A DNA stretch of 64,000 nucleotides from Oculina patagonica (GCF_052425735.1 NC_135761.1:20274001-20338000), one strand, 5' to 3'. Positions 24,579 through 64,000 are shown, counted from the first letter of the stretch. A program made the numbers and translations. The notes: generated by a model from the letters alone, not told the origin.

Positions 24579-25160
24579 GCAATTTGTCATAACCCCGTCA
24601 TCCCGGTATTTAAGAGAGTGTTTTGCGCATACGGAGTGCTAAAGGAGATCAAGTCGGATAATGGACTGCCATTCAACAGCCATAAAAAGTGACACTCGGA
24701 TGAGCGAAGGACAACGGTAACGTGAAGCGGTTTATACAGAGAGAAAAAAAAAAGACTGCTCCGCTGCGGGAAAAGTGCACAGGGAACGTAGAGCATATTG
24801 GACAACTTAAGATCCAACTGTTGGAGTTACATCCCATGGGTCAATAGACAACCTAAGCATTAGGATGGTCCATAATCATGACCTAGAAAAGAAATACGCC
24901 GACAAAAGAAGACATGTTACATTTTTTTTTGCTACGAGTCACTTACTCAGAAATCGCCTTCGTTTTGTATCCAACGGTATCGAAGTCGAAAGGAGATCTC
25001 GAATTGAACTCATGGCCGGCATTCTTATTGGTTTATGCTAGACTGGTCGCGTTGTTACAAAACGGACTTGTCACTGCGCAATTACCAAATGACAACACGC
25101 TACAAAACAAAACAACATTTATTTCCATATTGTAGCTGGGCGCGCAATACAGGGTACTGT

Positions 25161-28148
25161 TCATAGCATGTTTGCCTTAATCCAGTAGTACAGTTTAGCA
25201 ATGTTAGTGTACACGCCGTAATACTGCCCAGCGCAGCCCCATCCCCAGCTGGTCGTGCCCACGAGATACCAGCGGTCGTCCTTCTCACAAACAAGAGGAC
25301 CTGGTAGAGATAAAAAAGAGCATGTTGTTGCAAGTTACTGTAGTACTGGCCTCGTAATCGCCTGCGCCAACCCTGCCGCGTGTTCGTCGAGATAGGCGGC
25401 TACAATTGCAAGCTAAAACGAAACAAGGAAGCGGCAACGACTACGGGGAAAAGATGACCACGCCCTCGTGAGCTCCTCCTCCTCTTGAACGCTGCATAGT
25501 ATCGATAAAATTTTCTCTTGATATGCGAGGAAGACAAAAAGGGGCTTAGCTACCGTATACTTGTTACACTGTTCGACTAGGTACATCAGCTTAAGCTGGG
25601 TTGATAAGTAATTCTCGGCTCAGTCATTTATCAGCTCAAATAATTTTCGAAACTGCAAAGTGAGCTGCAGTGTGCACTAAAAATTGAGCTGCAGTTTTCC
25701 TAAATGTACGCTCGCGCTCCCCTTTCTTGAGCTACTTTTGTGAATGTCTGTTCAGGATGGTGCAAGTCAAACGTGTATAACTTCGCAACAACATATTTAA
25801 GAGTTTTGTTGCTTTACCTTTCCTGACACTTCTGCAATTTTCCTAACATATTATATAGTGTGTTTGAGTTAACGTTTGACAACGATAGCAATCGGCTCTT
25901 TAAGAACCAAAACCTTTCCCAAGAAATCTCAGTTGAAGTCTGTGGATTAAATCTTAGTGTGAGCAGTACTTTTATGTGATGTTGTTTTTAAAACTTCACA
26001 AAAAGTTTTTTTTTCAATTTTGAATGTTGGTGCTCTTGCAAGTGAAAGAGTTTTATCCAATAAGAGAACAGTTTATTTATGATATATTTGAGAGCATCAC
26101 TTTTACCTCCACTATCCCCCTGACAGGCGTCAATTCCTCCTCCTGAGAACCCAGCACAGATCATATTGGATGTTATGAGCTCAGGTCTGTAGTTCTGCTT
26201 GCAGTTCTCGTCCGAGATTATGGGGACACTTGCCTCTCTTAAAACAGGAGATGTACTGCCACCTTGACGGGTGCGACCCCACCCTGTGATGTAGCATGGT
26301 GTCCCTGTGCAAGTCGAACCATACAATGACATTAATGAACCGAAGACGTTTCGCCAAACAGCATACCTTAAAGTTTTCATGCCATATTTGAATTTCCAGT
26401 ATAGTGTGAGCTTAATTATGAAAAGAGAGTGACTTCATTTTTAAACTTTAAAAAATGTAAGCACAGCCATCCTCGCCTGGATTTTTAATAAAGAATCCTC
26501 CGCCACGTTTTTTTTGGTTTGAATAGTTTTTCAACAATCAGCACTTAGGTGTGCCGGAATGAGAATTCGCACTCATCTGAAATTCATTGCCAGGCAATAA
26601 AGGTCAGCGATGATCTAGCCTTGACAAGGGTCTTTGGTTCAAGGAGCCGCCATCTTGGAATTAACCGCCAGCGGAGATCCTCGGTACGAGGTTGCTGCGA
26701 CCTTGTCCCCAGGGCGCTTTTCCCGTCAAAAGTGGAAAGGGCCACTTTCGAAGGGAAAAGTACCCTGGGGACGAAGTTGAGGCTGCTATCGCTGGTGCAA
26801 ACAGTCAAAGAGGGCGAGACATGTTGGTGAAAAAAGATAAGAGCTGAATTCTAGTTTTTGCAACCGTGCAAGCAAACTAGTCTCGGAAGGATTTTCTCAG
26901 AAGGTTTAACGACACACGTACCTGGTGGGAAATCAGCATAACTGCTTTGCAGGCACGCTGGTCCCACGCGACTATTGAATTTGGCGGGAGACGCCAGCTT
27001 GATGACAGCAATGTCACGATCATGAGTAGCCGCTACTCCGTACGAGCGATGCGTGTACGCAGCGGCAATATCAATGTCTTGCTCGTAACCTTCAGTGGTT
27101 TCAAAGTGGTGCTCACCAAGGCGAACCTGTGATAAAATAAACACATGGACAGATTGTGTTAGTACTGTATCTGAATTTCGTCCCTACCCTATATTTGGAT
27201 GCCCCACAGCTAGGTTTAACGAGTCGGTTTACAAATTCTCATTTCATAAGTCTACCAGCGCGACATGAGAATATCTGTAGTTGTTAACTCTAAAAACATC
27301 ATAGGTCCCCTTTAAGGAATAGGTTTTGTTGTCAAGAACTAAAACTTGCATGTAGTACCCTTACAGAGAGAAGGGAAAGGACCTATTTAGAGAGAGACTT
27401 GATTTTTGTGGTATGTTGCAGGCCTCAACGAGTAAGGTAATTCACGGTAAAAAAATGTATAAGCCTTGACGTGATCCAAGCAATAACAGTCTATAACAGT
27501 CACTTTAAATTCTCTCCAAAAGCAACAAAACATTCTTGCACGCTCAATGTTATTCTTTCCGGTCATGCTATCTGGAGAAGAATGGAGTACCTTTGTTGAC
27601 ATATGTTATCCTATAAATGAGAAATGGGACCTTGATGGGAAGCTGTTATGAAAATCGTGCGAAGATTGTTCGAAGAATGCTCAAACGTTTCCGATTATTT
27701 TTCCCGAAGATTACCGAGGACTTACGAGTGTTGTTGCAACCGTTCTTTTGGCAAGTCAGTTGCAGCTTGCGAGGAAGCAAAGAGTGTTGCGTGACAACCT
27801 GCAAAGAAGGATACTTCGAGAGAGAGAGGAAAGTGTAACGCAATCAGTGTCGAGACACAATACCCACCTTGTAGTCCTTGATAAAAGTGTCGATACTGGA
27901 GGGGATGCAGTGTGCAGCTGTTACCACGTGGTACGCGGAGACCAAAGTTCCTCCACAGTCTTGAGACTTACAAGTCTTACACATGATAGCAACTTGCCAA
28001 GGCCACGCCCCTGGGGTTGCGACCTTTCCTCCTACGATTTGACCGACGCTCAAACCGGCAACTGAGCGGTTGGTCACCTTCACGCCACAGGAGACCGGAG
28101 GAGGGGGAGTGGTCGTAGGGGGATCGGTCAAAGGATCCCTCGCTAGAG
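25161..28148 (-). CDS. Trypsin-like serine protease domain exons (part of the dual-protease gene)
   Basis: SCG linker, [33 protein letters not shown] (Asp at the S1 pocket position), SWGWGC, GVYT, stop TGA at 25163-25161. Confidence 0.95.
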
Positions 28149-31100
28149 CTGTATAAGGAAACAGACATTCCAAAACACTTGTGAATAAAAGAAAATAAAA
28201 ATGTTTGTGTATTGGATGAGACGGATTATATCTGTTAGAACAGTATTCTAATGACTGTCGTAATAAAGTCAATAAACACGTGACCAATCAAGAGTTTATA
28301 ACGCATTAAGTCACTGCAAAGCGCGGGAAAACGTGCAACCGGTACCAAGCGAGGGAAACGCATATATAGGTACAAGCCAATTGAAGTCCCGTTTGATAGT
28401 GTTTTTTGCAACTCCTGATTGGTTGATCAGTAAGGTAGCATGATTTCTCTGAGTTGAAGTGCATTACATCAGCATTTTTAACCAATCACAGATTTCCAGA
28501 CGGTCGGAAACCTCTCAAACAGATTAACATAAAGGTCGGTTTAACTAACCTGGTTTACAAATGAAGGGTTACGGGTGCGTGCACCGCTTGCCTATCCAGT
28601 CAAAAAAAGCGAGAGAAACAATAGCCACGCGAACGCTTGAGGGCGAGAGTGTTCTTGCGGCTTTTTTTTTCTCGCTTTTCGCTTGACACGCTAAGGGAAA
28701 AGAGGGTCTGCTCAATTCTATAACGTAAGCGAAGAGAAGTTGATCTATAAGCTGCTTTCATCACAGATTGATCTGTTGTGGACTGATTAGTATGGTTACT
28801 GGAAACTGACTAACTTCGCATTGGCGATTAGTGTAATAAGGTTGCTTGGTAACCATGGGACTCATGGGAGAATTCAAAAAATATGTATTAGTGACCTTAA
28901 ACTCACCGATCTCGCATATGAACGGGTGTTGTCTAGCAAAAACCCCTGTACATGCAGTATCCAACCAGCCACCACTATATCTGTACATCTCCACACAGTC
29001 TTCATTACCAAACAGGTTGTTGGGCTCATTGCTGGTCCACTGGGTGTACGTGAGTGGTTCCCCGTTATCCCAACGCGAAAATGCGCCTGAAGCGTCTCGA
29101 CGAAGTCCAATCCAAACCGCGTAGTCCCCGGTAAGCTGAGAAGTCATGCTCTTGATGAAGTTATGTTCTTTAGCGTCGTTAATGGCGACGAGAGTTCCGC
29201 CATGTTGTTGGCAGCGAGCTTTTGCGGCGTACCAGAAAATTTTTTCATTGAATGCCTTGTAGCAGGATGTGCCAAATTTATTCCAGCCTGGTGAGCAGGT
29301 TACTTCTGTAAAAGATTCATACGACATGAGTTTACGGAAACTAACCTAAAGTTTATTCCTCTGAAATGGAACCTGTCCTGAGATTTTTGTCCAACTTTGC
29401 CTATTAGTTAAGCCTGGTTTTCACTAGCGACGCAAGCACAAGCGCAAGCACAAGCGGAATCACGCAAAAAGGACAAATTTTGATCCTTGTGCTTGTGCTT
29501 GCGGCAAGCACAAGCAGAAGCATCGAAATACAGTGCGCTGGTGCTTTTGCTTGCGTCGAAGCCGTTTTCACGGTAAAATAAGAGCGGTTATCCTTGCGCT
29601 TGTGCTTGCGTCGCTAGTGAAAACCAGGCTTTATTTATCTTAAAGGAAGTTTAATTTTGAAATAAAAATATGTTAGGAAGCAACAACACCTTGTTTATAC
29701 CCAATAATTCTTACACTCTGAGTGTATAGTAAAGTTATGTAGATCTGTCGTCCTCGTTCAATAGGAGGAGGCCTTGCTATAATAAGAACATGAGTAAAGT
29801 GCACTTAATGGAATAAAACGCATATTAATGAGAGGATGTTGTCCAAGATTCTGCAATACTGAGAAATCCAATTTTTTAATACTTGCCTTCTATCTTCGTT
29901 GCAGGAATGATTGTTGTTGTAGTCAGTGACATGGGCGTGGTGGGTGCAGGGGGCTGAGCTGCAACACATTTGCCAGGGATCAGTCTGATCTCGTCCAGTG
30001 CTATGTCACTTCTATACCCGCTACCACGGACAGCTTCAAACACAACCTGTGTTAGAATAAGACAAAAATGACATCAATCGAACTGATGACGGTTTTCACT
30101 AGTGGATAACTAGCTTACTCTCGAATCTCCTGGCAGAGGTGAAACGATAAGATAACACAAACGTTAGGATTAGCTGCATCCAGATTAAGTGTCTAGGAGT
30201 GTTGCTAATGATAATCCATTGCAGATTAAACCCCAGCATTTTCGCCCCAACAGTTCGTTGGTACCCACATTTATAGTAGCTAGTGCCTTACCCTACTAAA
30301 CCATTATGATTTATCACTCAAGGAAGAAAAAATCCTCCAGGGGGTGGGGTGGTACTCCATGTAAAAGCCGTATGGGTATGTGCAGTACCGTTGGATTGAG
30401 AAAATGAGTTTACCGATTTTCAGTGATTATATTCTTGGAATTAAAATTTATTTATTGTAGCAAATGTAACCGTTTTGTATTAGAAGAAAGAACAGGTACG
30501 GGTTAGGTAAGTCTTCAGCAGGGGCTAAAGACCCTGCCCGGGCCCCTTCTATTAAAAGACCGGCTCCCGATGTTCAGGAAGTGATTGACAGTAGCAGGAG
30601 CGAGTTGGTAATGGGCTTCCGATTTTGGCTTCCCTTTGCATGGAGTGCCAGTGCAATGAAGGTAGTTCCCCAGACTTATTCATATGTTGCTTCTAAACAG
30701 TTGGTCGTGAGATTTACGTGTTCCGTTCATGACAAGAGTAGACAGAGTACACTGACACAAGAAATCCCGCAAGGGCTCGACCCAGGCCTCTTGATCCATT
30801 GGGCCACTACGCTAATCAAAATGAGACTACTTATGGCCTCAACTCTTTTCGTTATTTTGCATCTAAGGCCTGGAACTCCTTACCTAATAATTCACTATTG
30901 GATGAGAACCTGTGAAAAACCTGTGAAAAACCTGTGAAAAAGCATGTGACACAGAAACACCCTCTGAAAAAACATGTGAATTTTGCAAGGGCTAAATTTT
31001 GTCCAAAAATCACAAAATTTAGTACCTGTGAAAAAACCTGTGAATTTTAGGACCTGTGAAAAAACCTGTGAAAAAATATGTGAACAAAATATGAAAAAAA

Positions 31101-34100
31101 TTCACTTTTAAAACCTGTGAATAGACCTGTGAATTAACCTCTGAAGAAATAACATTAAAAATCTCTCAACAAACATGTGAAAAAACCTTTCAAAATTAAT
31201 AATCAATTAATTTAACTATCAAGGAGTGTTATTGTAAAAACAGTATAAAAGTCTGCCAACATAATTTAACACAAAAATGTACAAATGGACAAACATACAG
31301 TTGAAAGCCAGGTCACAAGACTTGCAAGATTTCATCAGGCCACACCTGACTCTATCTTTTGTAAGGACTAGACAGGTCAAACAATTGAATATTTTGTTTG
31401 CTTGTGTGCTATTGTGCCACAATTAAAGTCAAATTACATGTATGAGTGGGTTTGTAATACCAACTAGGGCTCAAAATAACGGCCAGTCAACGGACAATGT
31501 CCGGCCAAGATGATAAATCATTTGTCCAGACAGATGTTCAGTTCAGTTTGCCAGTCATTTTGACCAGTCATGCACTGGACCAGAAAAATTTGTTATACCA
31601 ATTCGTAATTCTAACAACCTTTTTAACATATTTTGCTTAATATGAAGTATCAGAAAACTCTACAAGAATCCAGGGAGGGGAGGGGGGGGGGTGGGGCACT
31701 CAAAAAAGTTTTATACGGGGAGGCTCCGCCCTAAGTTCTAACCCCTTTAAATATACCATTTTTGACAGAAATTGTACCCCTTTTGTATACCTTTAACTGA
31801 AAAAGGTACCCCTTTCATATACCTAAGAGAATGGCGTGGACTTAAAATAAGACGTTTTCTTGTCATTTTTATGTAGCGCTTAATAAATTAAAATAATACA
31901 GCCATAAATTGCGTCTGTTTGAAATATTTTAAATAAAGGCCCTTTTAAATAGCCAAATGACAGATTTCCATACCCTTTCATATACTTAAACTAGTGAAAT
32001 CCCTACCCTTTTATATACCTGAAGCCTAAAAAAGGTACCCCTTTCGGGCGGAGCCTCCCCGTATAGGCCATTATAGGGAGTACCCCCCCCCCCCCCTGGT
32101 ACAAGAGCCGTGTAGGTTTGTTCAAGTCAGTACTATACTTCAATATTATGCGAAATGTCAACAAAAAGAACGTGCATGAAGAAATATTTGAAGTTGGTAA
32201 ACAGGTATTTCATTCAAAAAAGGTGAAACAACGTGAAAGATGACTGAATTTTGTCTCAGGTAATTGACTTGTTGTTATCGCATCCTAAAAGGGTATTGAG
32301 AAAACACAGGGAATAAAAATGGAAAGAAAGCAAAGCAACAAATTTAAAATGGTTGCACCCGCCTACATGATCCAGACTTTGACTTCTTTACGCACTTTTG
32401 AGTTCAAATAATAATGGAATAAATCCCTTAAATTCAATGGTGTAACATATAATATGCTCAGACATCTTGCTCACCGTCTGCTGCATTTTCCCTTCAGGGC
32501 TTGGATTTTTTTGCATGTATATGAATGACATAATCTCATAGGGGGAAAAGGTGTGTACATGTGTAGGGCTGAAACCAGTCCAGAAAATTCTATCCCAGGA
32601 CAAAAAATATGTACATGGAAATGCTCAGTGTTTTTCACATGTACTCATCATCTGAGTACATTGTAGTATTGGCATGCTACATGTATGTTCCGTTAAAGAA
32701 AAAACAAAGCGGCAAACAAAAAACATAATAAACCAAAACCTTGTGAATTGTAAAGGTGACACTTAGTTGCACTTGCTTGCTAAAAAAATAAAACAATGAG
32801 TAATGAATGGTACAGCAACAAAGTGTGCAAGATAACCTTTCTTTGCAAAATCTTGCTGTCAGTGTTTGTTTGTTTGTTTGTATACTGTTCTGGGTAACTC
32901 TATGCCGGTACTCAAAACAAAATCAGAGCAGATCTGCTCAAAGTTTATACAGGGCTCGAAATTAAAAAGAAATGAAGTTCCCACCTGGCACCTAAGTGGT
33001 AAGAAACGTTGCTAAATTGTGAAAACAAACAGATACTAGTTCACAAGTGTTTAAAAATCATTTGTACTAGTAGAATTTAATTAATAAAGGACAGACTATG
33101 TTAATATTAGAAAAGAAACTATCAAACAAGTAAGTGTTCTATTGCTAGAACTCCATGTTTAGCCTCGATTTAGCCTGGTTATAAATTGTCAGTATTCAAG
33201 GGTGTGCAAAGGATCATGGGGCGATTCAAACAAGGTCGGCCATTTGCAAGTTTTTCCGATGCAAGAGAATCTTTTACAGCTAAGGAAAAGGATGAATTTA
33301 CTTCTTTTCTTATTTGAATGTTCTAGAAACAAAGATCTTCCAATGTAACTTTCTGGATGGGCAAAATGGCTGAGAAAGTGACTGTTATTCATCTTCAACA
33401 CAAAGAAAAATAGTCGCCATTTCGGCGACTAAACCAAAACTTTTAGTCGCCAAGGATGAAACGTTTATCGCACTGGAAACCATATCAGTCAAAACTTCGA
33501 GCCCTGAGTAAAACAGATAAGTACAAGCTTCTTCATACCACTGGTGTCAGCTTCTTTGCTTCCAGTTTTCGGATTCCAAATCACTTCAATCCAAGGTTTC
33601 ATTGTCTTTTTCGACACTCCAAATGTTGTCTAAATGTCCTCTTCATTTTTGCGTTAGGTGGGGAAAGATAGTTTTCATATTAAAAATGCACCTTCGTTGT
33701 GCCTTCGGATTAACTCTCCTTTCCAGAGGAAGAAGAACTGGAATAATTTCGCCGTCACTCCATCTCCATATTGTATTTTGTAAAACTTGACAAGAACTTA
33801 GTAACCCCTCGTTTATGCGACCACGACAAAAGTACAGCGGTGTTCTTAAAAGCATGCTCAGTTGGGGTGGCAGCCGCGTTTTTTGGCGGGCTTTTTACCG
33901 CCAAATCGTGAAGAGAATCAACTCATTTCTTCAAGCTGTTTTGCCGGATTCTTGCTGCCTTGAAAATGAAAAATGTAGTGCACAAAATCTCACCCACGTG
34001 CACGGAGTTCAAGAAATATCGGGAAAGGAATTCTTGGTATAAAGATGAAGGTAAGCGACTTTTCTTGTATAGATACAGGCCAGTAGGCTAGCGCTGGGAA

Positions 34101-37100
34101 CACCTTTGCGCTCGGACTGTGAGCTTTTTATAAATGTAAATAAGCTTAAGTTAACCTTAACTTTCAAGCTGATTTTTTTTAACAACCTGTACAAATAATA
34201 CTTTGTTTTTTTACCCTATCAAATGTTTATCCATTGGCAGTGCGTGTACTGAGAATGTACATGTGTATAATTTGCCCTGCCACTCATGATCAGTCAGTAC
34301 AGCCTGGGGATTAGTTTTACGAGCAAAATCGTTGCACCTTATTCGATTGTATTTTACATTGTAATCCTAGCAAGGGCACTGCAGTTTTAAGATCTTTTAT
34401 AATTCTTTTCAGCAAAGATCAACGAAGCACCACGGCTGAACAAAAAATCGGCAAATTCTGCAGTGTTATAATCTGGGAAGCGGTTTCACTGTTGCGAGGA
34501 CAACAATAACTAGGTATTGGTGAAAGACTGAATGAAAAATTTGTGGTGTATTTTATTGTATGCCAGATGAAAACTTTGCACTATATTAACACAAATAAAT
34601 ATCATGGCGCCTGATTTTCAATGTGAAATAGTTGAATAATTCTTAAACAGATGTATGTCTTCCATTGTTAACACTACGGTTTTTATATCCCTGAGCACAT
34701 TGTTACACATGTTTATGTGTATGTACAAGCTTTTCCTTAAATGAAGTTTTTGTAGAACAAGCTTTATTAGTTGATTTCAATCAATCTAGTTTTTTTATTC
34801 CATTTGTTTAGAAATCACCCCTAGTCCAGTTCTTGAAAGATGGAATTTGGAAGACTTACTTCCATATTAATGTTATGGCTAAAGACAATGAGAAAGTTGA
34901 TAAATATAAAGACAGCATCACTTCAAGCACAGTTCGCAAAACAACAACAGCAATCAAAAGACCAAGCCAGCAACCATGTGAACTGAATATCAACGAGTCT
35001 GAAGATGATGAAGCTAGCTTAAACAAGACAATGATGAGTTAAAAAGAAACCCAGAGGAAATTTGACAAACTAAAGGTAAGCTTATGTGTACTGCTGCAGT
35101 AGCTACTGCATGTAATTAGTACCAGTACCTCCAACCCAGCATTTGTACATCAAGTATAAGCCCACAGTGAGTCAAACAAGTCCAGTGATGCAGACTCAAC
35201 TGAATCAACCATTTTTTTAAACTCGCCCGCACTAAAAAGGGATTCTTAAACAGTTGAATTGATTTGCTAGACTTCAAATTATCTTCAAGATGCATTTTGT
35301 TAAAAAACAATCACATCACATGATGTTCTAGAACCACCATGAACTAAGAGGAGGGGCAGGTGGCTATGCGCACAAGAATGGCTTTCTCTATCTTATTAAC
35401 ATGGGGCAAAAGCATTCCTGCTTATCAGGCCAGCTGGGGATAATTGGAAGAATTCTGAGCCCAAGATGCACTTGTTAAGTGGTACATTGGCTGTCTAAAT
35501 GTACGATTGATGGGGATCCTCTTATGTAATAAGCTAAGTACATAGTCATATAATAAAAAAAATGATTTTATTTTTTTATAGGTTGCATTTCTACCTGCTA
35601 TTTGTAATTTAGTAGTTATTAATGATTAACTTTTCATCAACTGTCCATAATTTGTATAATTGCTTTATTTGTAGATAGTAGAACTCATCCCAGGTTCACA
35701 TGGGTATGTTTATGCCAACATGTTTTGGCCATGCTGGCCTCCAGATGAGCATAAGGTTCTGGCTGTACAGTATTCCTGCTGAATGCTTTTTACACAAATG
35801 AGGAATTAAATGGAGCAAATGGCAAATTGCTAATAATTACTGATCCACACATTTTAAATAAGCATCTGGTAAGCATAAATTTAGAGATCTACAAGTTTAT
35901 AACTTAGTCTGATTGCCATTAATTAACTTAATACCCTAATGAATGCTGCATTCAATTGATTTGTCACTTCGTTTTTACCCATTTTCTATGCCACTCGATT
36001 TACAAGCAGTACAGAAAAATACAAGCACCATTGAACATTTGCAAGACCATTACAGCATTGCAATAACATTAACACAATGATGAGTGATGAGTGTCAAAAG
36101 TACATGTAGTTTGAAAAGCTTTGATTTATACTTAGTAACTTGTTTTAATGTCTGTTTTATTGATTTAAAATAGGATTTACATTGAAGAGGACAGGGATGC
36201 ACTAAATCTACCATCAAGATAAGTCTCTGAAACAAACTTACCACACTTGACTGCCATAAAGGAATTTTATATGGAACTAGCTGAGCTCTTTATTCTTTTG
36301 AAAACCTCACCTGGCCATATACAGCCTATAGTGTTAGAAGATACTTAGTTTTCTCTTTATGTACTTAACTTTCTCTTTTTAAAACATCTGGTGTTGAAAA
36401 GGTTTCTACTTGACTTTTCCATTACTGGTTATAATAAATCATTGAATATTGTTGAATCTAGATGTTTATTTATTTCTAATACTTATCACCGAGGCTGACG
36501 ATGTATACTTTTAAGTCTGTTCTCCCAGTGGAATACATAATGGGTTGTCCTAACTCCCGAAATGCCAGAAACCCGAAATGCCGGAAATCCAGATAAGAAA
36601 GCCCGGAATCCTAAAACCCAGAATGACCTTTTTGCGTACGCCTTTTTCAAGATAAATACGTGGAAATATGTTATATTTTTGGGAAATTGGAAGTTTGTTA
36701 CGAGTTGCCATTTACGTTGCGAGTTATTGAATCAAATTGTCAATTTCGATACAAAGTTCTCAACTTCGGCCCAGCTGAAATTCGCAATTCGCTAGTTGAG
36801 GAGAAACAAAACATGTTGTTTCAAAGTCATGGCGATATCTGAACTCCATAATTTTAAAGGAAACAAGTTGCGGCGGGAATATTCCAGCGATTCTTGCCGC
36901 TCAAGTTGAAAATCGAAAATCACAGTCCGGCTGTATTTTATTTACTGCGCCTCAGCGGTATTATTAAATTTGCTGTGCATTTTCGTTGTTAGTTTTAAAA
37001 TTTGTTTCTTTTCACACTTTCTTCAATAATCATCTTTAAAACTGGTTCCTTGTTTCTCAGATTTTGCCAAGGTACATCGACAAAATTTTAAAAACTCAAA

Positions 37101-43100: not shown

Positions 43101-46100
43101 GGGCCGACGTTTTTCAAGTTTACCCGAACGCAATCTGTTTTAATCTTCGCGAATTTTGCCCACCCATACCCCTTTTTGGCCTTTCTGTGTTTCTTTTTCC
43201 TGTTTTAAGCCGTTTTTGTGATATTTCAGTTAATTCAATGACCATTTGGTCAGTGCCGAAATTGCCTAAAATTGCGTGACATAGCCCCTTTAAAAACATG
43301 AGCCACCTTTGTTGGTCGCGGGCTTTTTACAGTCCACCGCCAGCGAGGGACTAAAAATTTCATACTGATAACGTGGCACTACAGAGATTCGGGCAGTGTC
43401 GCTGATTCTTTGTTACGCGCACGTGAATTTCGCACCTGGTCAACAATCAACTGGAGAGCTACGTCACCAGCATGAAGTTTTGAAGCAAAATCTTAGATGC
43501 CCCTCGGAACGGACAGGAAATAAGCGCGCCGGGCAATTCGAACAACTTTTCCTCAGAATATTTTTTTTACGCAATAAGTTTCTTAATGTATCACAAACAG
43601 TCAGAATAATCAATTTTCACAAGGGAAGATTTTCGTTTTCATTAAGGTGCAGTCAAACAGAAGAAAAGCAATTCAGGGCATAAGCCGTAACACTTTTGAA
43701 AATTCCTCAAACGGTGTTGTACATATACAAACAATAAAAGAACTAAAATCCGTTTAGCTCATGTTTTGTTGACAATAGAATGTTTGAAAACTAATTTTAA
43801 CCGGAGGTAAACTTCTATTAACGTGAACGTTATTATTGCTGTGCAATATTGGCCCAGCTGACTGATGTCTCTCATTATTGTATTAAATTTACTACTGAAC
43901 AGGTTTATCGTACAAGAGATTCTTCCAATCGCTGACCTGTGTTGGAGACATCATTACTTGGCCCAGTGTCCGGCGCGCTTGATGTGGTTCCCTTGTTGAA
44001 CAGCCAGTCGAACTCGTCACCAGTTCCCTGAGTGAATTGACACAAAGACTGGGCATCGAAGTTGCAGTACACTAGGAAATGACGAAGGCCTAAGGTCAGT
44101 TTCAGAATTTTCATGTCTGGGTTTTTTCTGTGACCTTACCTTCCGCCCTTCCTCAGATCCCCAATTTTCCATATCAATGTTGTTAATGTCTTAATCTAAA
44201 CTTTAGCCTCCACATTACTTCCGAGAACATGACTCACCAAAAAAACAAAACTTTATCCCTCTCCCCCTCCCTCCAAAAAAAGAAACCCAACTGTAATCGC
44301 CAATTTAAAACCACTAAAGTTCTTCGCACCGCCCCCGGGTGGTTACACTTTTGGGTGTTTTGCATCATATGGCTGATGTAACAAATCTTCTGCAATGACC
44401 GTCGAAAACAGTCCCCCATTCGAGCTTTCGCATTTTCAATGTCAAACTTCGACTAATTCGACATCAAAAAATGTTCTCTTAATTGTTAGCATGAGTGATG
44501 TAATGAAGAACGCCTCCTCACCTTCACCGCTACTAGGTGGGATGGGCGTAGTAATTGGTCCGACCGGGATCGGTGTGGTGACTGGCGGAGCAGGGGTTGT
44601 TGTCGGGTCTTCACATTTCCCTGGGGTTAGTTTAATTTCGTCCAACGCGATATCACTTTGATAACCACTTCCGCGAGTAGCCTCAAATTCAATCTAGCAA
44701 TGAGATATACTATTAGAAAATTGATGTAGTTTGTACTCTTAGCGTTTGGTCTACTAACGTTTTAATCCATGTCATTAAGTACAAAATCTGTCACACCTAT
44801 GAAGGCATTTTACAATTTCAACTACGTCTCTTACTACACGCTTAGCAAATGTGTCTCCACGACACAATTTTCCTTTGCGAGGCCAAGGCCATGCGCTTAT
44901 CCATATATATTTACATATAGAAAATACAGATTGGTTGTTTGGTTCTTTTTTTTTTTTTAAAGTGCACTTAAAAAGTAAATTTCTTTAACTTGTTTCACCT
45001 AGAAACATGTGCCTCCCTTGTTGAATAGCCAGTTGAAATATGTCGGTTAGTTTTTTAAAACCAAATTAAGCCAGAGCAGATTATTAGTAGCGGCTCCAAT
45101 TTCAGTTTTATACGTTGTTCTTTACCGAAACTTAGAAGAAAAAATCGTTGTTGAACAAGAGGAATAAACTTTTTTTTCCAATCCGTGAGCTTTTAACAAC
45201 TGGTAACCTGCAAACAAGCTCTTCTTTGTGTTTCACTGACAAAAAAAAGGGAAGAAGGGCCTCGCTGTAGGTTACACAATTAGTGCCCGGTCACTTAACC
45301 GTTTGTTGCTCCCCCTTTAGAGACCGTTGGCCCTTATTGCCGTTGCGTCGCATTTTATCTGCTACTTATCGGAGGCTGGATTTCCTGCCGATAAATATGC
45401 TTGTTTGTCAACTCAACCGAATAAACGTTTTGTCATCACATTTTTTCTAAACATTTTGTGATCACCTGAAACTGCTCTGGACCTGTAAGTGACGTCTGCG
45501 CCATATACCACCGGTCTCCTTGGTTACCGTTGATAGAAAATACCTCGGTTCTGCTCGAAGCTGTATTCTTGTGCGCCTTTAGAGAGCCCATGGACGTGCC
45601 AAGCATGTGAAAATGAAAACGAAGGCAGTAAGGTCCCGTCAGCCGGGGTGACATCAAAACGGCCCTATCACCTTGTACACGTGGCCTAGATGTTTCCGCG
45701 TAAACGTACAAACCTGTGAAAATAACGAAATGGTTGTTTATTTCATTGTTAAGTTATTTTTTGTAAAAAAATCCTCTAAGTTGTCGTGATGGACCAGGTA
45801 GTCACTGACTCAGTGAGTGATGTTTATATGTCACACCAATCAGATTGGGGCTAGGAGGTATTCACCTATTAGCTAGCCTGCGAAAACAGCCGCCTCTCAC
45901 GCTCCGATCCGCTGTTTTCGCAGGCTACCTATTAGCCTTATTTCGCCATTCCCAGGATGTGCACTTTATGTAGATTACCGCGAGGAGTTTGTGTGTGAAT
46001 TTGAAGCCGAAAAGCGTTCTGAATTCGTCATACTGGCGTAAGATCGTAGTCTTTGACATATACCAGCATCTGATCAAGGCTCTGGTGTTTTTGGCGTGGA

Positions 46101-49100
46101 ACACATGTTGTAACGCGCTTTATTCGGTGATTAGAAGACTTAAGGTGTCCATTCTTTGACAGGACAGACAGGATCGCGTGTTACAGCTAAGGTGTAAGGT
46201 AATTTAGGGTTAATGCAGAACAAGTGCCAACTTGCGATCCAGCTTTACGATTTATCAATAATGATTTCTTTCATGTGCTTTTGTCAAACATTAGAGTCCT
46301 TCACATAATACTTACAATTTGAGCAGAAATACTTGCTTTTGTAGACCTTGGTTAACAATTAATTTCGAAAATAATAACGGGACCTGTTTTTTACACTTTT
46401 GGGTTCCCTCTAGTTAATGATTTTAATTTATTCTCATTATCTGTCTGTTTGAGAACAGATTAACAGTGTAAAGAAAAATCGATGTTGATCACCTTTTCCA
46501 GACATATCTGTTCTCGGCCCAGTCCCTCCGCTTGAGGTGGGGCCTTGGTGGACGGTCCAGTCAAAGTCGTCTCCAGTACCTTGATAGAACTCGCACAGTG
46601 AACCGGTGTCAAAACTGCAATACACTGTCGAAAGTGAAAGTGTCAGCAATGCACTTAAAACACGTTAAGATTAATGTAACTGGCTCTTTGCTGGTGTGAA
46701 ACGCGTTATTAAAAATACAGGATATTTTTTGCAGGATATTTCAGATATTACAAGTACTTTTGCACTGAAATATCGCAGCGTGTGTTTTGAGCCAAGGTGA
46801 CCGAGCAAACAGGCGCATTCAAATTCTAAAGTACTGAGTGACTGATAATCTCACTATTCCGCCTGTATTGAGACAACGAAAACGAATACAATTGTGAAAT
46901 TTACCAACAATAAAATTGTGCGAGCGTCAACTAGTGCTATTTTGGCAGAAAAAAAAAACGTGGTAACCATCTTCGTTTTACACTTTAAAAGTAGAGTGCT
47001 TTGCAGAGTGCTGGAGTAATGGCCAGCTAACCATCTTTCACAGCTCGGATCTTTAGAACCGGAATCCAGTGCACTAACCACTAACTCACAATTCACAAAT
47101 GAATCAAAATTACTCACCCACAGAATTTTCATCTGGTCCAGGTACAACCGGCTCTAGAAAGAAACCAGTAATTTTTGTTAGTTTTGTTTCAGCTTTATAG
47201 TAATCTCTGTAACTTTGGTGCAGCCTAGCCAAGTTATCTACACCGCCGGAGTTATTCGTGACATAACTGTTACTAGAGCAGTTTTCAATTGAGTGTCGTA
47301 ACACCAAAACCAAAGTAATTACTCTGGCCAATCAGAAACGACATTGACAATCCAGTGAACCAATCAAAACTCGAAGCAAAAACATGAAGCTGACGCGAAG
47401 CGCGGGAAAACGTGCGCGAGCGAGTCACGATTGGTTTTGGTTTTAGTTCTGATTGGTCGAGAAAGTGGCGCGAGATTTTTAAACCAATCACTGAGCGTAG
47501 CAATGCAAAACCAAAGCAAACGCAATTTACTTTCGACACTCAAGTGAAAACCGCTCTATTTCCTTTGGATGGGATGGCAGTCCAACGCAGGTTTTCACCA
47601 AGCATTTTGTCTGTAGAGGATTTTTTTTCGCGCACGTTGAATACTTCAGCGGCCGAAGGCTGTCGCCATAAACCGCGCAAGAAAAACCTCTGGCACCCAG
47701 GGTATAGCTGGTACACATTTATACACTTGAGTGGAGAGAGGCACTGCCAGAATAAAGTTGTTTGCCCAACAACATAACACAATGGCAAGGCCAGGGCTCT
47801 AACCCGGACCACTTTATCCAGCATCTAATCATAGTTAATATAGGGAAATGGTTAGGAAGCCCGGCAAACATCAAAGGAGCAAACAAAGAGGCCAAGATTT
47901 ATGTTGGAAGGTCCACGACCCTGCACATCTTTTGTTTTGCGCTCATACACTATGCATGAATTACGTAATCGCAATGTTTTTATTGGTTAGTTACATGAAC
48001 ACACGTAACCACCTATTGTATTTTGTCAGGTTTTGTGTAGGGTCAACCCACAAAATAGCGAACAAAAACATACAACAAAGAACTTTGTCGGGATTCCTAA
48101 CCATTTCCCTCTATTAACTATGATCTAATTCATTAACCATTTGATAACCGCGCCTTCCGCCATCTGTTTCAGTCTTAGTCACAAAGATAAGTATGTCTTG
48201 GTACCTGGAATCTGTCTGCAATGGACAAGTATCCCATCCGGGAGGGAGTAGAAATACTCCTAGGTACTTTCATGCTACTGAAACCGGGATAAACTCCGGC
48301 CTGATGGAAGACTAAACCTAACCTACCTACCTGGTATCTGTGCTGCTTATAGGTAAATTTCAATAAATCTTTATTTTCTCTTTTCCTCAAGTTTCAAATC
48401 CTCTAATCCCTCATCCTGTTCGTTCTTCATAAGCATCTTAAAAAGTATCAAAAAGTTCTCAAGAAAATGTTGCTGGACGTTCTACTACAAACCACTGACG
48501 ACATTTTAAGTTTGGGTAAAACCTCAGGAGAAAACGGCAGACAAGTGCTAAAACGTATGATAAACGTTGATCTGCATGTCGCAAAGTTCACATATCGGCA
48601 TGCATAAATAATCGTGTTATATTTTTCAACTACCGCCTAGCCGGAGCGAGGCGTGGAAACGAGAATTAGGTGTTAGTAAAAATTTAAATAAGGACGCTAT
48701 CAGTTGCAATGGTCGCTATTAGGAGCAACGGACGCTATCAGTAGCAAAGGACGCTTTTCACTAGAAGCTACTAGAAGTTCGAACTAAAGGGATTTTATTG
48801 AACCAGAAAACACAAATTGTAAGTACATTTGTTTCGAATTCACGTTTATAAGAAAGCTTGTACAAACAGTGACTTGCGTATTTCGAATATAGTAATTGCA
48901 GTTGACTATGACTTCGATTCACTACTATGGATCAAGTGTAGTGCAAATAAAATTCAGAGTTCTTTAAATCCCTGGTGTATCTTCAATAAAAGTACAGACG
49001 AGAGCGCGAAACAAACGTTATATTCAGGTATAAGCCCCCCAGCCCTCACCCCCCAAGTATAACTTACTTGTCGGACACTTGTACAACTTGTTTATCTGGC

Positions 49101-52100
49101 GAACGTCGTTAGCGCTAAACCCCTTCCGCTGACCCATTTGATTGGCGCTACTCTTCAGTCCAACGATGGTAGATCGGCCATTTCTGCTGAAGGCTTTTGG
49201 TCCATAATGCATTATGCTTCCATAGTCGTAAGATTCGCCAAGATGTTGGATCTGTCCTTGACCGAATTTGTCGAAGTTGCTTTCTTTGCCTAGTGGAACA
49301 AAAAAAACCACAATGTCTAAGTGCTGTTTCGGTTAGGCTAATAAATTCTTCATCATTTGCTCTTTCATATTTAAACAGTATCAAAAAACAAATTCGTTTT
49401 CATACGTTTGTTTTTCAAAACCTCAGCCAAAACAGAGTGGCAAGTCCACGCAAGCCGCGCAAACGTTGAAACATGAACTTGCGTAGAGACTTGCGTTGTA
49501 TGGCCAGTGGGAATTTGGTCGCAAGCAGTCGGAATTCCCAAAAAAGTCATTTCAAACTTCAGAGCCAGATGCGTCCTGCCCTTGGAAAAACGTGTGTGTG
49601 ATGTGAAATTAATCACAGTTGGATTAAATTTCGTTTCTGATTGGTTGAAAGACAATATGTCTGTTCTGATTGGTTAAGGCACTTTTTAACATTGGAGAAC
49701 TAAGCCAACGCAAACCTATACAAGGCAAGCGCAATATTACATTCAACATTCGGTCATGCAGTATGGGGAAGTTGGGCAAATTTGGAAATGAAGCTGACGA
49801 TTTCGAGCGATAGCTCATCGTCGTAGCGATTATGTGAGAGGATTGTAGGGGTAGCGTTAGTATAGTAAACTAAGGAGTTATGCTATTGGCTAATGAAGGA
49901 ATATGGCAAGCCTCCTCTTACCCAGTTCAATGTTTTCGTACAGGACCTTGACGTAACTATCTCTGTCCGTTCGTGACTGCTCGTGGAAGAAGCCAATAGC
50001 GTGCGCTAGCTCGTGGATGACAATCCCCTTGTACCAGCAGTATCTGTGAAGGTTTACCTTCTGCTCTCCGCGTGCTGTGCGACCCACAGATGATGAGCAC
50101 CTGTCAATCACCATAAACCGTAAGTTAATTAACTTATCATGTCTTATCATGGATATAAGGGAGGGATGGGAGGGGAGGGGTTTTGGAAGGGAGTGAGGTT
50201 GCGTGATCGGTTAATGGGAGGAGTCTCAACAAGAGCAATGTAATTACGAAAGACATGAGGTGTTAAAAAATTGACTGTACATATTTGATGCAGTGAAGTG
50301 ACATCTTTTACATCACAAACGTGTCAGTTTACGGGTCTAAACTCCAAGGCGATCGAAATAGCAAGCATGTCTAATACTCACTGCGTGTTCAAGTCGTTAA
50401 AGCAAATTTAAGTGCCTCGTACGAGTCGTACAATAAGGTTTACCATTTGCACAATTGGTTCAAGTGGTAAATGTGATACTTTTCAGTCAAATAAAATGTC
50501 ATTTTACGTAAACAGTGGCCAATGTTGACACATTCAACTGGTACAACTCACGCGACTCGTGCAACTGGTGAAACTGCACCTCATTATATGCACTTGGAAT
50601 TATAATGGCGGAATTGTACAGCTAAATCTATTCCAGACACTATTAAAATATATATTGAGCATCAGTTCCACATCCGATCTAAAACACTCAGTTTGCAATG
50701 CTTTTGAATGATAAAAAGTACACTATATTGGCCCACCATTGCACGCCCCTGTACTGTATTGCCGACCAACTGTGGCTTACCCATCACCGTTTGTGAACTT
50801 GATATAGTTTTTCTGAGTGGTCCTGGCGACAAATTTCACGCAGGTCAGCTTATGATAATCCGCAATAGCGTCATTGATCGCTTGAACGCCAGCTTTTTCT
50901 GTGGATGTCGAAAAGCAAAAACAAACAAAACATAAATCAAACATTTTGTTGTATATGAAAGTGGTATAGTTTCTCTCCTGGTAAGTGTAGAATTAGTGTG
51001 TTCCTTATATTATATTTAACATTTTCGCGTTGCGAAACACTATTTTTAACCGGGGTTGACAACAAATGAATTGAATGCGGCTTCAATACTGAATCCTGAG
51101 ACACACGAAATGTACACCAATGTCTGAGAATAAGATACTCAAACGCAGTCTAAGTAGGGATGTGACATCCCCTACCCTATGCGCCGTTTCAGATTAACTG
51201 TTCCAGGCCTACTCACCAATGTTTCTATCTATGACATAAGGCACGGTGTTGCTTGGCCACAGACCGTGCGGGTGTGTGATGGCATTGCGGGAGTTTGGGT
51301 CTTGTGTTATAAACCTCAGAGTCTCGACGTCGGAGATGATATCTCCCAGGAGTATACCGGCACCAGTGTTGCCTAAAACTAAAAGTTAGAAATGTTTTTT
51401 TTTGTGATGAACAAGATTAAATGTTTAAATTCCTGAGGAAGAAAAACAACAAAGATGTTTTAATGAAGCAAATAGGAACAAGGACGTTTAGATACGAGAA
51501 GATTGGTGCAGAATGTTAACTTTAAGTTAGAGATATCCGCAAATCCCTTCTTTACGAATTTCCTGAGCCCGCGAGCCTTTACGATGGCGGCATAGTAACG
51601 TGTGTATCCTCATAGCAACAGGCTGACGAAAACAGGTTTTTTAGTTATGTTTTTATGTCATTTCTGATTTACCAATGAGCAATGAAAATTGCTCATTCAT
51701 ACCTCCATATGCTTCACATTCATTTATACCATCGCTAGGACACCAATTCATATTATTTGGCTCATTCTGCGGCGTTAGAGTGATTTTTACTTGAGTATTG
51801 AAAGTAATTCGCATTTGCTTTAATTTTAAAAACCCCGCCATTTTTACGACCAATCATATGTAGAACCAAAAACGATCATGACTCGCTCACACGCGTTTTC
51901 CCGCGCTTCACGCGGGCTACATGTATTTGCTTCGAGTTTTGATTATATCACTGGATTGTGCTGGAGAAATTTCTTTGGTTTTGGTTTTAAAACACTTTAA
52001 AATCGAAAGCCGCTATAAAGAGGAGTTGCGAATTATAAACTTATCTGTATGTTACGTAAGGAAAGTTGGCGTACTATACCTGTGCATTCTCAAGTTGTGT

Positions 52101-52817
52101 TCTAAAGTTCACTGACATGATATTAAGTTGGAGATATTTTGTTCCTGCTTTGTTGATGTTTTTGTTTAATTTTGCTTTTGATTCAGTGAATTATAAGAGT
52201 CAATGACAGGAAACAAGGTTGTCAAATTAAATTGAAAATAACCCCGTTTATTGAGCCCCGCGAGCCCCAAATAAGCGCCCCGTCTGCAAGGTCTGGTTCA
52301 GTTTGAAATATCGTTCCAGGAGTTTAATCGAGAAAGTACGGTATGCGTAAATAGACAGGAACTAGTTGTCAAAGATGAAATTGTCGTTTAAAAATTTACA
52401 TTATTTAGGGATCATTTGTCTCCTAGCCTCCTACACAGACGCTTTTTGGGCTCGTCGCGTAGGAGGTTAATCGTCACTCAGTCTCTTTACAGAAGAGCGA
52501 GAATGCTCTTTTTCAATCAAAACGGGTTTTCTCTAAGCGGGGGAAAAACAACGAAGGCTTTCTTGTGCTAATGGCGTCTGGAGTTTTAATCAACGTATAT
52601 TTATTCAGCCGCAGCTCGGTTTTATCGATGTTAATAACTTTGTTCATTAAATAACACTAGATCCTAAGATATGTCAGGAAAAAACTCAGGGCAGCTATAT
52701 GAAAAAAGTAATGTCAGTAATAGCTACTGACTCACCGCATTTAAATGAAGTCACCCGCTTGTAACAGATGATACTGAGATAACAAATGACTGAGATAAAA
52801 TTTGAACACTTAGTCAT
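25161..52817 (-). CDS. Secreted multidomain dual protease: signal/pro-peptide, astacin (M12A), MAM x3, C-type lectin, trypsin-like S1A serine protease; about 1244 aa, 22 exons
   Basis: Phase-consistent exons summing to 3735 nt: 52817-52736, 52111-52080, 51766-51703, 51372-51217, 50898-50781, 50100-49922, 49289-49068, 47153-47118, 46624-46493, 45713-45466, 44693-44522, 44071-43937, 42889-42642, 41951-41807, 41386-41252, 38158-37911, 30046-29887, 29305-28907, 28148-27868, 27126-26922, 26304-26107, 25300-25161. Motifs: [32 protein letters not shown], three CxFD...FDW...GYYIYAEAS...DIALDEI MAM units, lectin WIGL...EPNN...EDC, IVGG, TAAHC, DIAVIKL, GDSGGPL. The first three exons are the least certain. 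Confidence 0.85.
26698..26779. mobile_element. Short hairpin MITE
   Basis: TIR CGACCTTGTCCCCAGGG / CCCTGGGGACGAAGTTG; similar 9-bp flanks AGGTTGCTG and AGGCTGCTA. Confidence 0.6.
28907..29305 (-). CDS. C-type lectin domain exon (part of the dual-protease gene)
   Basis: [23 protein letters not shown] (EPN motif), EDCVEM, WLD..C, FICE. Confidence 0.92.
29411..29630. mobile_element. PIF/Harbinger (Tourist-like) MITE
   Basis: About 38-bp perfect TIR AGCCTGGTTTTCACTAGCGACGCAAGCACAAGCGCAAG; TTA on both flanks. Confidence 0.85.
29887..46624 (-). CDS. Three MAM domains with Pro/Thr-rich linkers (part of the dual-protease gene)
   Basis: Each domain is encoded by three exons of 132/135, 248 and 145-172 nt with the same phases. 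Confidence 0.92.
31670..32099. mobile_element. G/C-tailed MITE nested in the large transposon (same family as 40328-40704)
   Basis: Internal inverted ATACGGGGAGGCTCCGCCC / GGGCGGAGCCTCCCCGTAT; flanks TACAAGAAT and TACAAGAGC. Confidence 0.75.
32950..33506. mobile_element. hAT-like MITE nested in the large transposon
   Basis: TIR CAGGGCTCGAA / TTCGAGCCCTG; subterminal AGTCGCC/GGCGACT; no clean TSD. Confidence 0.6.
34812..35868 (+). pseudogene. Degraded spliced gene inside the transposon, with a BEN-domain-like segment
   Basis: Exon-like blocks with AG/GT ends at 34812-35075 and 35675-35868; the second reads [13 protein letters not shown] then, after a frameshift, [32 protein letters not shown] similarity is by eye only. 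Confidence 0.4.
38906..39972. mobile_element. About 1.07-kb non-autonomous DNA transposon (Kolobok-like)
   Basis: TIR GGTGGCTCGTACC(G/A)GTTTT at both ends; TSD not intact. Confidence 0.6.
40328..40704. mobile_element. G/C-tailed MITE with a 9-bp TSD-like flank (Mutator-like)
   Basis: Highly similar to 31670-32099; flanks TTTCACTCC and TTTCACTTC. Confidence 0.75.
42918..43289. mobile_element. Kolobok-like MITE
   Basis: TIR AGGGGCTATGTCACG / CGTGACATAGCCCCT followed by TTAA. Confidence 0.7.
45874..45927. mobile_element. 54-bp minimal MITE with a 9-bp TSD
   Basis: 17-bp perfect TIR TAGCCTGCGAAAACAGC; TSD CCTATTAGC at 45865-45873 and 45928-45936. Confidence 0.85.
47274..47558. mobile_element. 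MITE family member (partial copies near 4830-4917, 28310-28370 and 51775-52015)
   Basis: TIR TAGAGC(A/G)GTTTTCA(A/C)TTGAGTGTCG; internal CCAATCA and AAGCGCGGGAAAACG motifs shared with the other copies. Confidence 0.8.
47830..48122. mobile_element. P-element-like MITE nested in a SINE
   Basis: TIR CATAGTTAATA(T/G)AGGGAAATGGTTAGGAA; 7-bp TSD ATCTAAT (47823-47829, 48123-48129). Confidence 0.8.
49068..51372 (-). CDS. Astacin zinc-metalloprotease domain exons (part of the dual-protease gene)
   Basis: HEXXHXXGXXHEXXRXDR zinc motif ([19 protein letters not shown]), Met-turn SIMHY, aspartate-switch GDI in the prodomain, mature N-terminus RNA...LWP..VPYVI. Confidence 0.95.
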
Positions 52818-53517: not shown

Positions 53518-54243
53518 ATGGACGTCCCTTTACACGAAGATTTCCTCAAAAAAGAAGAAGAGAAGGAAAAATGGGTTGAATACTGGGTAATTTTGAGGAA
53601 TTGTGTTTTGTATTTTTACGATGAGAAGACGGATTTGTGGCACGAGTACTGCGACAAAATCGACATCACTGCGAACTCGCGATGTGCTGTTGTGAAGCGG
53701 AAGACATACAGCCATCGATTTAAACTGGTCACCGAAGAGGGAACGTGTCTTTTGAAATGCCACACAAACCTTCAAAGACATCGCTGGATGCATGCGATCG
53801 AACTGGCGGTGAGGGAAATTTCCTCTAAAGCCACAGACCTCGCACCGGTGGCAACAACACCGCGTGGTTGTTACTACGAGCGAGATTTGTTTGGAAGAAG
53901 TATGCGAAGGGAAATGAGGCAACAAGAAGCAGCGCGCCAAAATAACAACAACACGCTTGAAGAACTAAGTTTGAATTTGGATTTGGAAAAAGAAGGCAAG
54001 CGTGAAAGACAGACTTCACGAAAGAGCTCCAAGTTACAGAAAAGCGCTCAAAGGGATAAAGACTCATCCATCGCATTCGAATCACTACAATGCGATTTTG
54101 ATCCAAATCTTGGGAGCCCGGTGGAAAATCTCGCTTTCTCCGACGATGAAGTCAGCGTAGATGGAAATATAAAGATGCGAAGCATTCGTTCGGCACCTGT
54201 AGCGAAATTTATTCGTGTTGGAAGTGCTAGTAAGCCAATATAA
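53518..54243 (+). CDS. PH-domain protein, paralog A (241 aa, intronless CDS)
   Basis: N-terminal PH fold pattern HEDFLKK...W..YWVILR..VLYFY...F.LVT...LLKC.....RWM.AIE, followed by a charged low-complexity tail; clear paralog at 57413. Confidence 0.85.
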   Translation: MDVPLHEDFLKKEEEKEKWVEYWVILRNCVLYFYDEKTDLWHEYCDKIDITANSRCAVVKRKTYSHRFKLVTEEGTCLLKCHTNLQRHRWMHAIELAVREISSKATDLAPVATTPRGCYYERDLFGRSMRREMRQQEAARQNNNNTLEELSLNLDLEKEGKRERQTSRKSSKLQKSAQRDKDSSIAFESLQCDFDPNLGSPVENLAFSDDEVSVDGNIKMRSIRSAPVAKFIRVGSASKPI

Positions 54244-63669: not shown

Positions 63670-64000
63670 CTGCAGAGCGAAGCCAAAACAGTTAGTATAA
63701 AAACAAGTCTTCTAACACCGAAGATTTCAATTGTACAGTGATCACGGGGTTTCATTATTTACAGCAGCTGAAAGACCTTCAGCTTTCCGTGAGGATTAAA
63801 ATCGGCTGTTAGCACTGAAACAACAATTCAGTAAAGTGACCTTTAAATTTAAAAGGTCATATGCTATTATTATTGCGTATTTCCTGTTGACTGATCTTTA
63901 AATGATTTGGATGGCGCGGATTGACTGAACGGAACCTTGAAGACGCTCAAAACAGCTCAATTTTCAAACTGCTTGGCCCATAGTTTTCAGTTTTACCCTC

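Follow-up and report, generated by a model that had tools for sequence, protein, structure and literature searches.

A two-protease chain in stony corals: the astacin, MAM, lectin-like and trypsin domains of Oculina patagonica LOC144651650

Can a single coral polypeptide carry two complete proteases, an astacin metalloprotease at one end and a trypsin at the other? The question is raised by a stretch of 64,000 nucleotides from the stony coral Oculina patagonica (GCF_052425735.1 NC_135761.1:20274001-20338000), here called the window, which had been described as encoding, between 25161 and 52817, one secreted chain with an intact astacin, three MAM domains, a C-type lectin and an intact trypsin. 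A 22-exon model built from the window is identical to RefSeq protein XP_078367722.1 at 1223/1223 residues, placing the chain in the gene LOC144651650 (minus strand). This two-protease chain is a real, expressed gene that is conserved across stony corals, and not a prediction artefact. Very probably, it is one gene giving one mRNA and one mosaic precursor, which would be secreted as a double zymogen whose trypsin is activated by something other than its own tryptic activity.

The gene was identified by querying representatives of protein clusters with the lectin exon. The matches were dominated by multi-lectin proteins and only P0073, with Astacin, three MAM, two Lectin_C and Trypsin domains, was useful; querying with P0073 then led to P0153 (KAL9975855.1), the cluster mate of XP_078367722.1 (P0384). 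Both are O. patagonica proteins, and the RefSeq label is ‘uncharacterized protein LOC144651650’. The gene is single copy in the 529-Mb assembly and extends over about 38.6 kb, with coding exons from 63664 or 63755 down to 25161 and a RefSeq coding sequence of 3672 nt. Read from its N-terminus, the chain has a propeptide, an astacin domain, three MAM domains, a single C-type lectin-like domain (CTLD) and a trypsin domain. When GT/GC-AG pairs were enumerated between the conserved cores, each neighbouring pair gave a direct in-phase junction, and there was no internal stop. Placed on the Pfam profiles, the exon pieces follow one another with neither gap nor overlap: Astacin 21-54, 57-113 and 117-189; MAM 1-38, 44-130 and 131-158, the same in each of the three copies; Lectin_C 4-106; and Trypsin 1-50, 52-120, 120-181 and 183-220. 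The central claim of the preliminary description, that all four domain families lie in one chain, is borne out by this single in-phase minus-strand open reading frame (ORF) and its identity to RefSeq. Its boundaries and counts need correcting. Only 19 of the 22 exons fall within 25161-52817, the proposed first exon starting at 52817 is absent from the RefSeq model, and the 22 exons totalling 3735 nt could not be reproduced: rebuilding the earlier model by direct junctions gave 19 and then 20 in-phase exons, of 3609 and 3639 nt.

That the two halves are transcribed together is best seen at their junction. We placed contigs from runs X1, X2 and X3, which were provisionally classed as RNA, on 24700-30300. 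Exon depth was about 10-48 and most intron sequence was at zero, and the contigs contained five spliced joints (29887/29305, 28907/28148, 27868/27126, 26922/26304 and 26107/25300), with GT-AG ends except for one GC-AG. The first joins the last MAM3 exon to the lectin exon, in frame, through the GC-AG intron, and the second joins the lectin exon to the trypsin exon, also in frame. As the 529-Mb assembly contains neither of these spliced junction sequences as DNA, and has only one copy of the gene, the contigs derive from spliced transcripts. Exon 17, from which the first joint departs, belongs to the upstream part of the gene, because MAM3 itself is split by a 7864-nt intron and the integrity of the domain requires both sides. 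Six runs (X3, X7, X9, X10, X11 and X14) have exon-sized word shares of both the astacin and the trypsin halves. An intronless contig of 4378 nt from DRR169405 holds Astacin, MAM, two Lectin_C and Trypsin domains in one ORF of 1398 amino acids (aa), and its 90%-identity cluster includes Acropora millepora XP_029195953.2. The statement that no second start or signal peptide precedes the trypsin also stands: there is none ahead of the lectin or trypsin exons, and the RNA junctions and the ortholog cDNA agree.

Orthologs with this architecture are recorded in RefSeq and UniProt from six or more genera of corals. The same domain order is found in Acropora (millepora, palmata, cervicornis), Montipora, Porites, Pocillopora (damicornis, meandrina) and Orbicella. 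In an alignment of eight sequences the orthologs are 64-82% identical to the Oculina protein and keep all of the catalytic and disulfide residues. Among the matches listed from our word-seeded searches there was no protein of a sea anemone or octocoral that combines the four domain families, which is no proof of absence. Both catalytic sets are complete, as had been claimed, with the zinc motif at 49983-50015, SIMHY at 49204-49218, TAAHC at 27907-27921, DIAV at about 27004-27015 and GDSGG at 26105-26119, all on the minus strand. In between come three motifs typical of MAM C-termini and a WxD motif of the lectin.

The astacin half is spread over exons 4 to 7 (all exons are on the minus strand). 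Exon 4 (51217-51378) encodes the aspartate-switch motif L(L/M)GDII, which is conserved in the prodomain and reads LLGDII at 51335-51352; the role of this motif is known from other astacins (PMC9848320). The predicted maturation bond, Arg67/Asn68, lies within 51275-51292, and the astacin domain begins in the same exon, the predicted mature N-terminus (NAIT...WP...VPY, Asn68 onward) aligning to residue 3 of mature BMP1. Exon 5 (50781-50898) covers profile positions 21-54, exon 6 (49922-50100) contains the full zinc motif, HExxHxxGFxHExxRxDRD, at 49959-50015 (residues 159-177), and exon 7 (49068-49289) contains the Met-turn SxMHY, here SIMHY at residues 214-218, and the end of the catalytic domain. 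PF01400 matched the exon pieces at 1e-22 and 1e-20. The zinc motif is conserved in all orthologs that cover it, and the MHY of the Met-turn is invariant in 8/8 sequences. Exon 8 (47118-47153) is a 36-nt linker leading to MAM1 (44522-46624; exons 46624-46493, 45713-45466 and 44693-44522, with a Pro/Thr linker), MAM2 (41807-44071; exons 44071-43937, 42889-42642 and 41951-41807, with a poly-Pro linker) and MAM3 (29887-41386; exons 41386-41252, 38158-37911 and 30046-29887, the last with a GC donor, GCAAGT). Each of the three MAM domains (PF00629) has four conserved cysteines, all invariant.

This half most resembles human meprin alpha and beta (PDB 7UAB, 4GWM). Residues 65-430 form one contiguous alignment (E ~5e-51) with the catalytic and MAM domains of meprin alpha (50-419) and meprin beta (38-406), and in the coral chain and the meprins alike the pro-astacin has an aspartate switch, a MAM domain comes directly after the catalytic domain and the maturation bond is Arg/Asn. 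By analogy with meprins, the MAM domains may serve in self-association. The coral chain is nevertheless not a meprin ortholog: it has no TRAF/MATH, EGF, transmembrane segment or inserted domain, and it adds two further MAM domains, a C-type lectin-like domain and a trypsin domain of its own. TRAF/MATH, EGF-like and C-terminal anchor families were absent from the Pfam matches of P0073 and from the lists for P0153 and the orthologs, and the Oculina chain ends five residues past the trypsin domain.

The lectin-like domain is encoded by a single exon, exon 18 (28907-29305). It has the CTLD signature (PF00059, E 1.6e-21, profile 4-106), with WIGL and paired cysteines, and among solved structures it comes closest to CTLDs from PLA2R, DEC-205 and Endo180. 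In lectins of the MBP type the Asn of the WND motif is a ligand for calcium and sugar. Oculina keeps EPN (29016-29027), which is EPD in Porites and Pocillopora, but WND is replaced by WLD (within 28950-28970) or WMD in 8/8 sequences. Canonical calcium-dependent sugar binding is therefore doubtful, given Leu or Met in place of the Asn in all orthologs and the identity of the nearest domains, and the earlier proposal of a ‘glycan-targeted’ complex is not supported as stated. The domain may serve in target binding. Acropora, Montipora, Pocillopora and Orbicella have two such domains, and there is one in Oculina and in the Porites model. A 48-nt relic of a second lectin exon persists in intron 18 of the Oculina gene (28551-28598, followed by a G/GTTAGT donor); it matches the end of lectin domain 2 in the Orbicella, Acropora and Pocillopora orthologs, has an in-frame stop, has lost most of the exon and is not spliced into RNA. 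The single-lectin state of Oculina is thus a secondary loss. A repeat also lies in the same intron at 28253-28439, with an RNA-contig depth of about 80-110, several-fold above the flanking exons.

The trypsin domain occupies exons 19 to 22. Exon 19 (27868-28148) encodes a Pro/Thr linker, the tether cysteine Cys970, the activation bond Gln986/Ile987 (IVGG), a CxxC insertion and TAAHC with the His57-equivalent; exon 20 (26922-27126) encodes the Asp102-equivalent (DIAV) and the Cys122-equivalent; exon 21 (26107-26304) encodes the Asp189-equivalent and GDSGG with the Ser195-equivalent; and exon 22 (25161-25300) completes the domain, with the stop codon at 25161-25163. A candidate exon 20 donor at 26916 was replaced, as the RNA contigs use 26922. 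The PF00089 pieces tile the profile from 1 to 220, the S1 triad (H1029, D1081 and S1176) is invariant in 8/8 sequences, and all of the S1 disulfides and the tether pair Cys970/Cys1101 are kept across the alignment. The Asp189-equivalent, D1170, at the base of the S1 pocket, is likewise invariant, and the domain would therefore be specific for Arg and Lys. Among solved structures it matches TMPRSS2, plasmin and enteropeptidase best (E ~1e-50). Like S1 mosaics of the enteropeptidase/TMPRSS type it is C-terminal and joined to a mosaic stem by a tether of the Cys1-Cys122 type; those proteases differ in being membrane-anchored or in plasma, in having no metalloprotease and in having an activation bond that follows Arg or Lys. 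The CxxC insertion (27955-27984, minus strand; residues 1005-1014), between the WPWQ motif and the Cys42-equivalent, is specific to the family, and its CxxC pair and the next Cys are invariant across the six coral genera compared.

The two activation sites are of opposite kinds. The astacin bond reads (S/G)R/NAI in every ortholog that covers it, an invariant tryptic Arg/Asn. The trypsin bond does not follow the Arg/Lys rule for S1 zymogens: IVGG is present in Oculina, but the P1 residue is Gln986. P1 is also Gln in Montipora, Glu in Acropora and Val in Pocillopora, and it is Lys only in Porites and Orbicella. In a survey of other S1 activation sites, which included those of other astacin-trypsin chains, P1 was Arg or Lys in 26/26 other cnidarian and 223/238 other fetched sites (249/264 altogether). 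A non-basic P1 excludes an activator of the trypsin type, including the domain itself, in most of the genera. A tryptic site on the metalloprotease and a non-tryptic site on the trypsin suggest, as far as the sequences can, that each protease may activate the other.

We picture digestive or gland cells as the likeliest source of the chain, which would be released as a double zymogen. The pro-astacin-MAM part would work like a meprin and lose its prodomain through trypsin-type cleavage after Arg67. In meprin beta, activation is carried out by tryptic proteases, at Arg61 (PMC5215381), and astacin prodomains sit in reverse orientation in the cleft, so that they cannot be cleaved intramolecularly by their own domain (PMC9848320). 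The S1 domain, once cleaved before Ile987, would stay attached to the stem through the Cys970-Cys1101 disulfide. The likeliest activator of that bond would be a protease with primed-side specificity, as metzincins have, and the astacin domain of the same chain is the obvious candidate. We put forward, with low confidence, that the chain is a self-contained reciprocal zymogen circuit retained from the ancestor of stony corals. The Arg-specific trypsin domain would remove the astacin prodomain at the invariant Arg67/Asn68 bond, and the astacin domain, reading the primed side, would cut the trypsin activation bond at x/(I/V)(I/V)GG. A trace of either activity might then ignite both, in cis or between molecules joined through their MAM domains. 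Such an arrangement would account for the drift of P1 to Gln, Glu, Val or Lys in this coral family alone.

The start of the gene is more complicated than its body. Three coding exons lie upstream of 52817: exon 1 (63664, or 63755, to 63647), exon 2 (62337-62376) and exon 3 (60960-61010, encoding GDLKSITPDSDETHINQ, which is conserved in orthologs). The true start is thus about 11 kb upstream of 52817. Exons 2 and 3 encode a propeptide segment, PPPDGG...ITPDSDE.HINQ, present in the RefSeq protein and in all orthologs. The ATG at 63755 opens an ORF resembling a signal peptide, MKPRDHC...LVFILTVLASLCRGN, with the hydrophobic core LVFILTVLASL, and ortholog N-termini consist of a signal peptide followed by NV(L/S)I.PVPTPP. 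Exon 1 has a strong donor, CAG/GTAAGG, after 63647 and a weak alternative, AAT/GTACTC, after 63663. Through the strong donor the ORF from 63755 enters exon 2 as VPTPPS and stops at 62359-62357. The beginning of this reading matches Pocillopora NVLILPVPTPP, and the remainder of exon 2 matches the orthologs in another frame (PPPDGGSGSQ). The register changes at a run of six C (62363-62368), where the ancestral frame gives VPTPP and then a stop and the annotated frame gives SLLPPPDGGSGSQ. Because the ORF from 63755 is out of frame, RefSeq starts at the ATG at 63664 (MYSLDQ), without a signal peptide. The weak donor would give one ORF of 1248 aa. The frame problem could be an assembly error at the homopolymer, a real frameshift allele or a break rescued by the alternative donor, and an assembly error seems most likely. 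The assembly contains no retrocopy or haplotig that would explain either the frame problem or the spliced contigs.

Several points weigh against a single secreted double zymogen whose halves activate each other. In the assembly the signal-peptide ORF is out of frame with the gene body through the strong donor, and secretion of the Oculina product is thus presumed rather than read from an in-frame signal peptide. Read support from Oculina spans exon 17 to the stop codon, and the junctions further upstream depend on the RefSeq model, the continuity of domains and profiles and the ortholog cDNA. Porites and Orbicella carry a Lys at the trypsin activation site. Reciprocal activation, finally, is an idea drawn from sequence comparison.

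The first of these points invites the most durable of the alternatives, that the sequenced Oculina individual carries a null or decaying allele, in which the one-nucleotide shift in exon 2 parts the signal peptide from the body and no secreted protein is made. The strong-donor ORF from 63755 reads NVLVRPVPTPPS and then stops, with PPPDGGSGSQ in the other frame, and both halves resemble the orthologs; the Oculina lineage has also already lost its second lectin exon. However, about 1200 downstream codons are undamaged and retain all of the catalytic residues and cysteines, several runs contain the mRNA, the shift is located at a C6 homopolymer, a classic site of assembly error, and the weak in-frame donor could rescue the signal peptide. 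We think a null allele improbable.

Slightly less probable again is a trypsin domain that stays permanently unactivated and acts in binding or regulation, leaving the astacin as the sole working enzyme. The Gln, Glu and Val at P1 in Oculina, Acropora and Pocillopora, none of them cleavable by trypsin-like activators, could be read in this way. Against it, the triad, Asp189, Gly193, the oxyanion region, IVGG, Asp194 and all five S1 disulfides are invariant in the six coral genera compared, and such invariance is the pattern of a working enzyme and not of a pseudoprotease.

The exon that had been proposed as the first (52736-52817) lies inside the 9581-nt intron 3. It does have an ATG, a stretch of hydrophobic residues that reaches a Kyte-Doolittle score of 2.58 over 11 aa, a GTGAGT donor and an in-phase join to exon 4 at 51372, and it might have been a genuine alternative first exon with a second promoter and a shorter propeptide. 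This is very unlikely, as the exon is missing from the RefSeq model, no ortholog has a similar N-terminus, its use would skip the conserved propeptide exons 2 and 3, and ORF fragments of this sort are common by chance in a 9.6-kb AT-rich intron. On the opposite strand, the same intron contains two intronless ORFs of 241 and 250 aa (53518-54243 and 57380-58132), both encoding a PH domain (E 1e-12 and 7e-11), which appear to be tandem paralogs.

It might also be asked whether an astacin-MAM gene lies beside a separate lectin-trypsin gene, divided from it within 30047-37910 and fused with it only by gene prediction. Earlier gene models for Acropora digitifera, A. muricata and A. cervicornis do break the locus in two, naming one part ‘MAM and LDL-receptor...’ and the other ‘trypsin-like’ or ‘enteropeptidase’, and read-through of the exon 17 donor meets a stop after three codons (IEGKY*). 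This reading is largely refuted by the in-frame splices 29887/29305 and 28907/28148 in three runs, by a MAM3 that straddles the 7.9-kb intron, by the full-length cDNA contig in the Acropora cluster and by the lack of a start or signal peptide before the lectin or trypsin exons. The 378-aa ‘trypsin-like’ models and contigs of Acropora were rejected as a separate short transcript, as they begin at an internal Met of lectin domain 2. The sole hydrophobic ORF in intron 17 was also rejected as a second signal peptide, as it lies within a repeat resembling a miniature inverted-repeat transposable element (MITE) with a huge multi-copy RNA depth. A MIR530 Rfam match in this repeat was dismissed (26 bits against a gathering score of 85). 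The MITE-like element itself (29403-29638) is 236 nt long with 54-nt terminal inverted repeats that are 89% complementary; its RNA-contig depth runs into thousands, with many variant copies, marking it as a highly transcribed multi-copy repeat. Separately, an unspliced contig of 826 nt in X1 and X2 runs from intron 16 into exon 17 (30020-30300 and beyond, minus strand), at about half the exon depth and with about 3% differences from the window; it could be pre-mRNA, a divergent allele or depth inflated by a repeat.

Cnidarians abound in mosaic astacins and trypsins, and the pairing of the two is not in itself new. The association of trypsin with Astacin arose in Cnidaria (Babonis et al. 2019, PMC6767649), and the cnidarian ‘tryptome’ described there combines trypsin with MAM and Astacin domains, with Astacin among the trypsin partners in Anthopleura, Edwardsiella and Podocoryna. 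In Nematostella, pharyngeal and mesenterial gland cells express such proteases (PMC6767649). The sole stony coral in that study, Acropora digitifera, has a domain list without Astacin or Lectin_C, and its models for this locus are split; a family with three MAM domains, a lectin and a non-basic activation site was not described. A review of astacins (PMC9848320, 2023), in its section on helminths and cnidarians, notes an astacin catalytic domain with a downstream trypsin-like domain in one chain, as a domain combination only, with no coral example and no functional work. The expectation that related fusions might already be on record was therefore right, both in these two papers and in the RefSeq and UniProt orthologs. 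Other chains with both protease families include P0352 (Oculina, 896 aa), P0339 and P0225 (JGI, with TSP1 repeats). They differ in having TSP1-repeat linkers or none, several trypsin domains and canonical Arg or Lys at the activation sites detected; in P0225 no activation site was detected. No literature naming this coral family, its accessions or its locus names was found in the library that we searched.

The coral chain is thus an uncharacterized addition to the published astacin-trypsin pairing, and its non-basic trypsin activation site is an oddity specific to the family. The analysis also corrects the 5′ end of the gene. Experiments might be repaid by the two activation sites, of which that of the metalloprotease is tryptic and that of the trypsin is not. 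If the two proteases do switch each other on, the chain would be a compact model of how protease cascades arise by domain fusion, and would offer a handle on extracellular digestion in corals.

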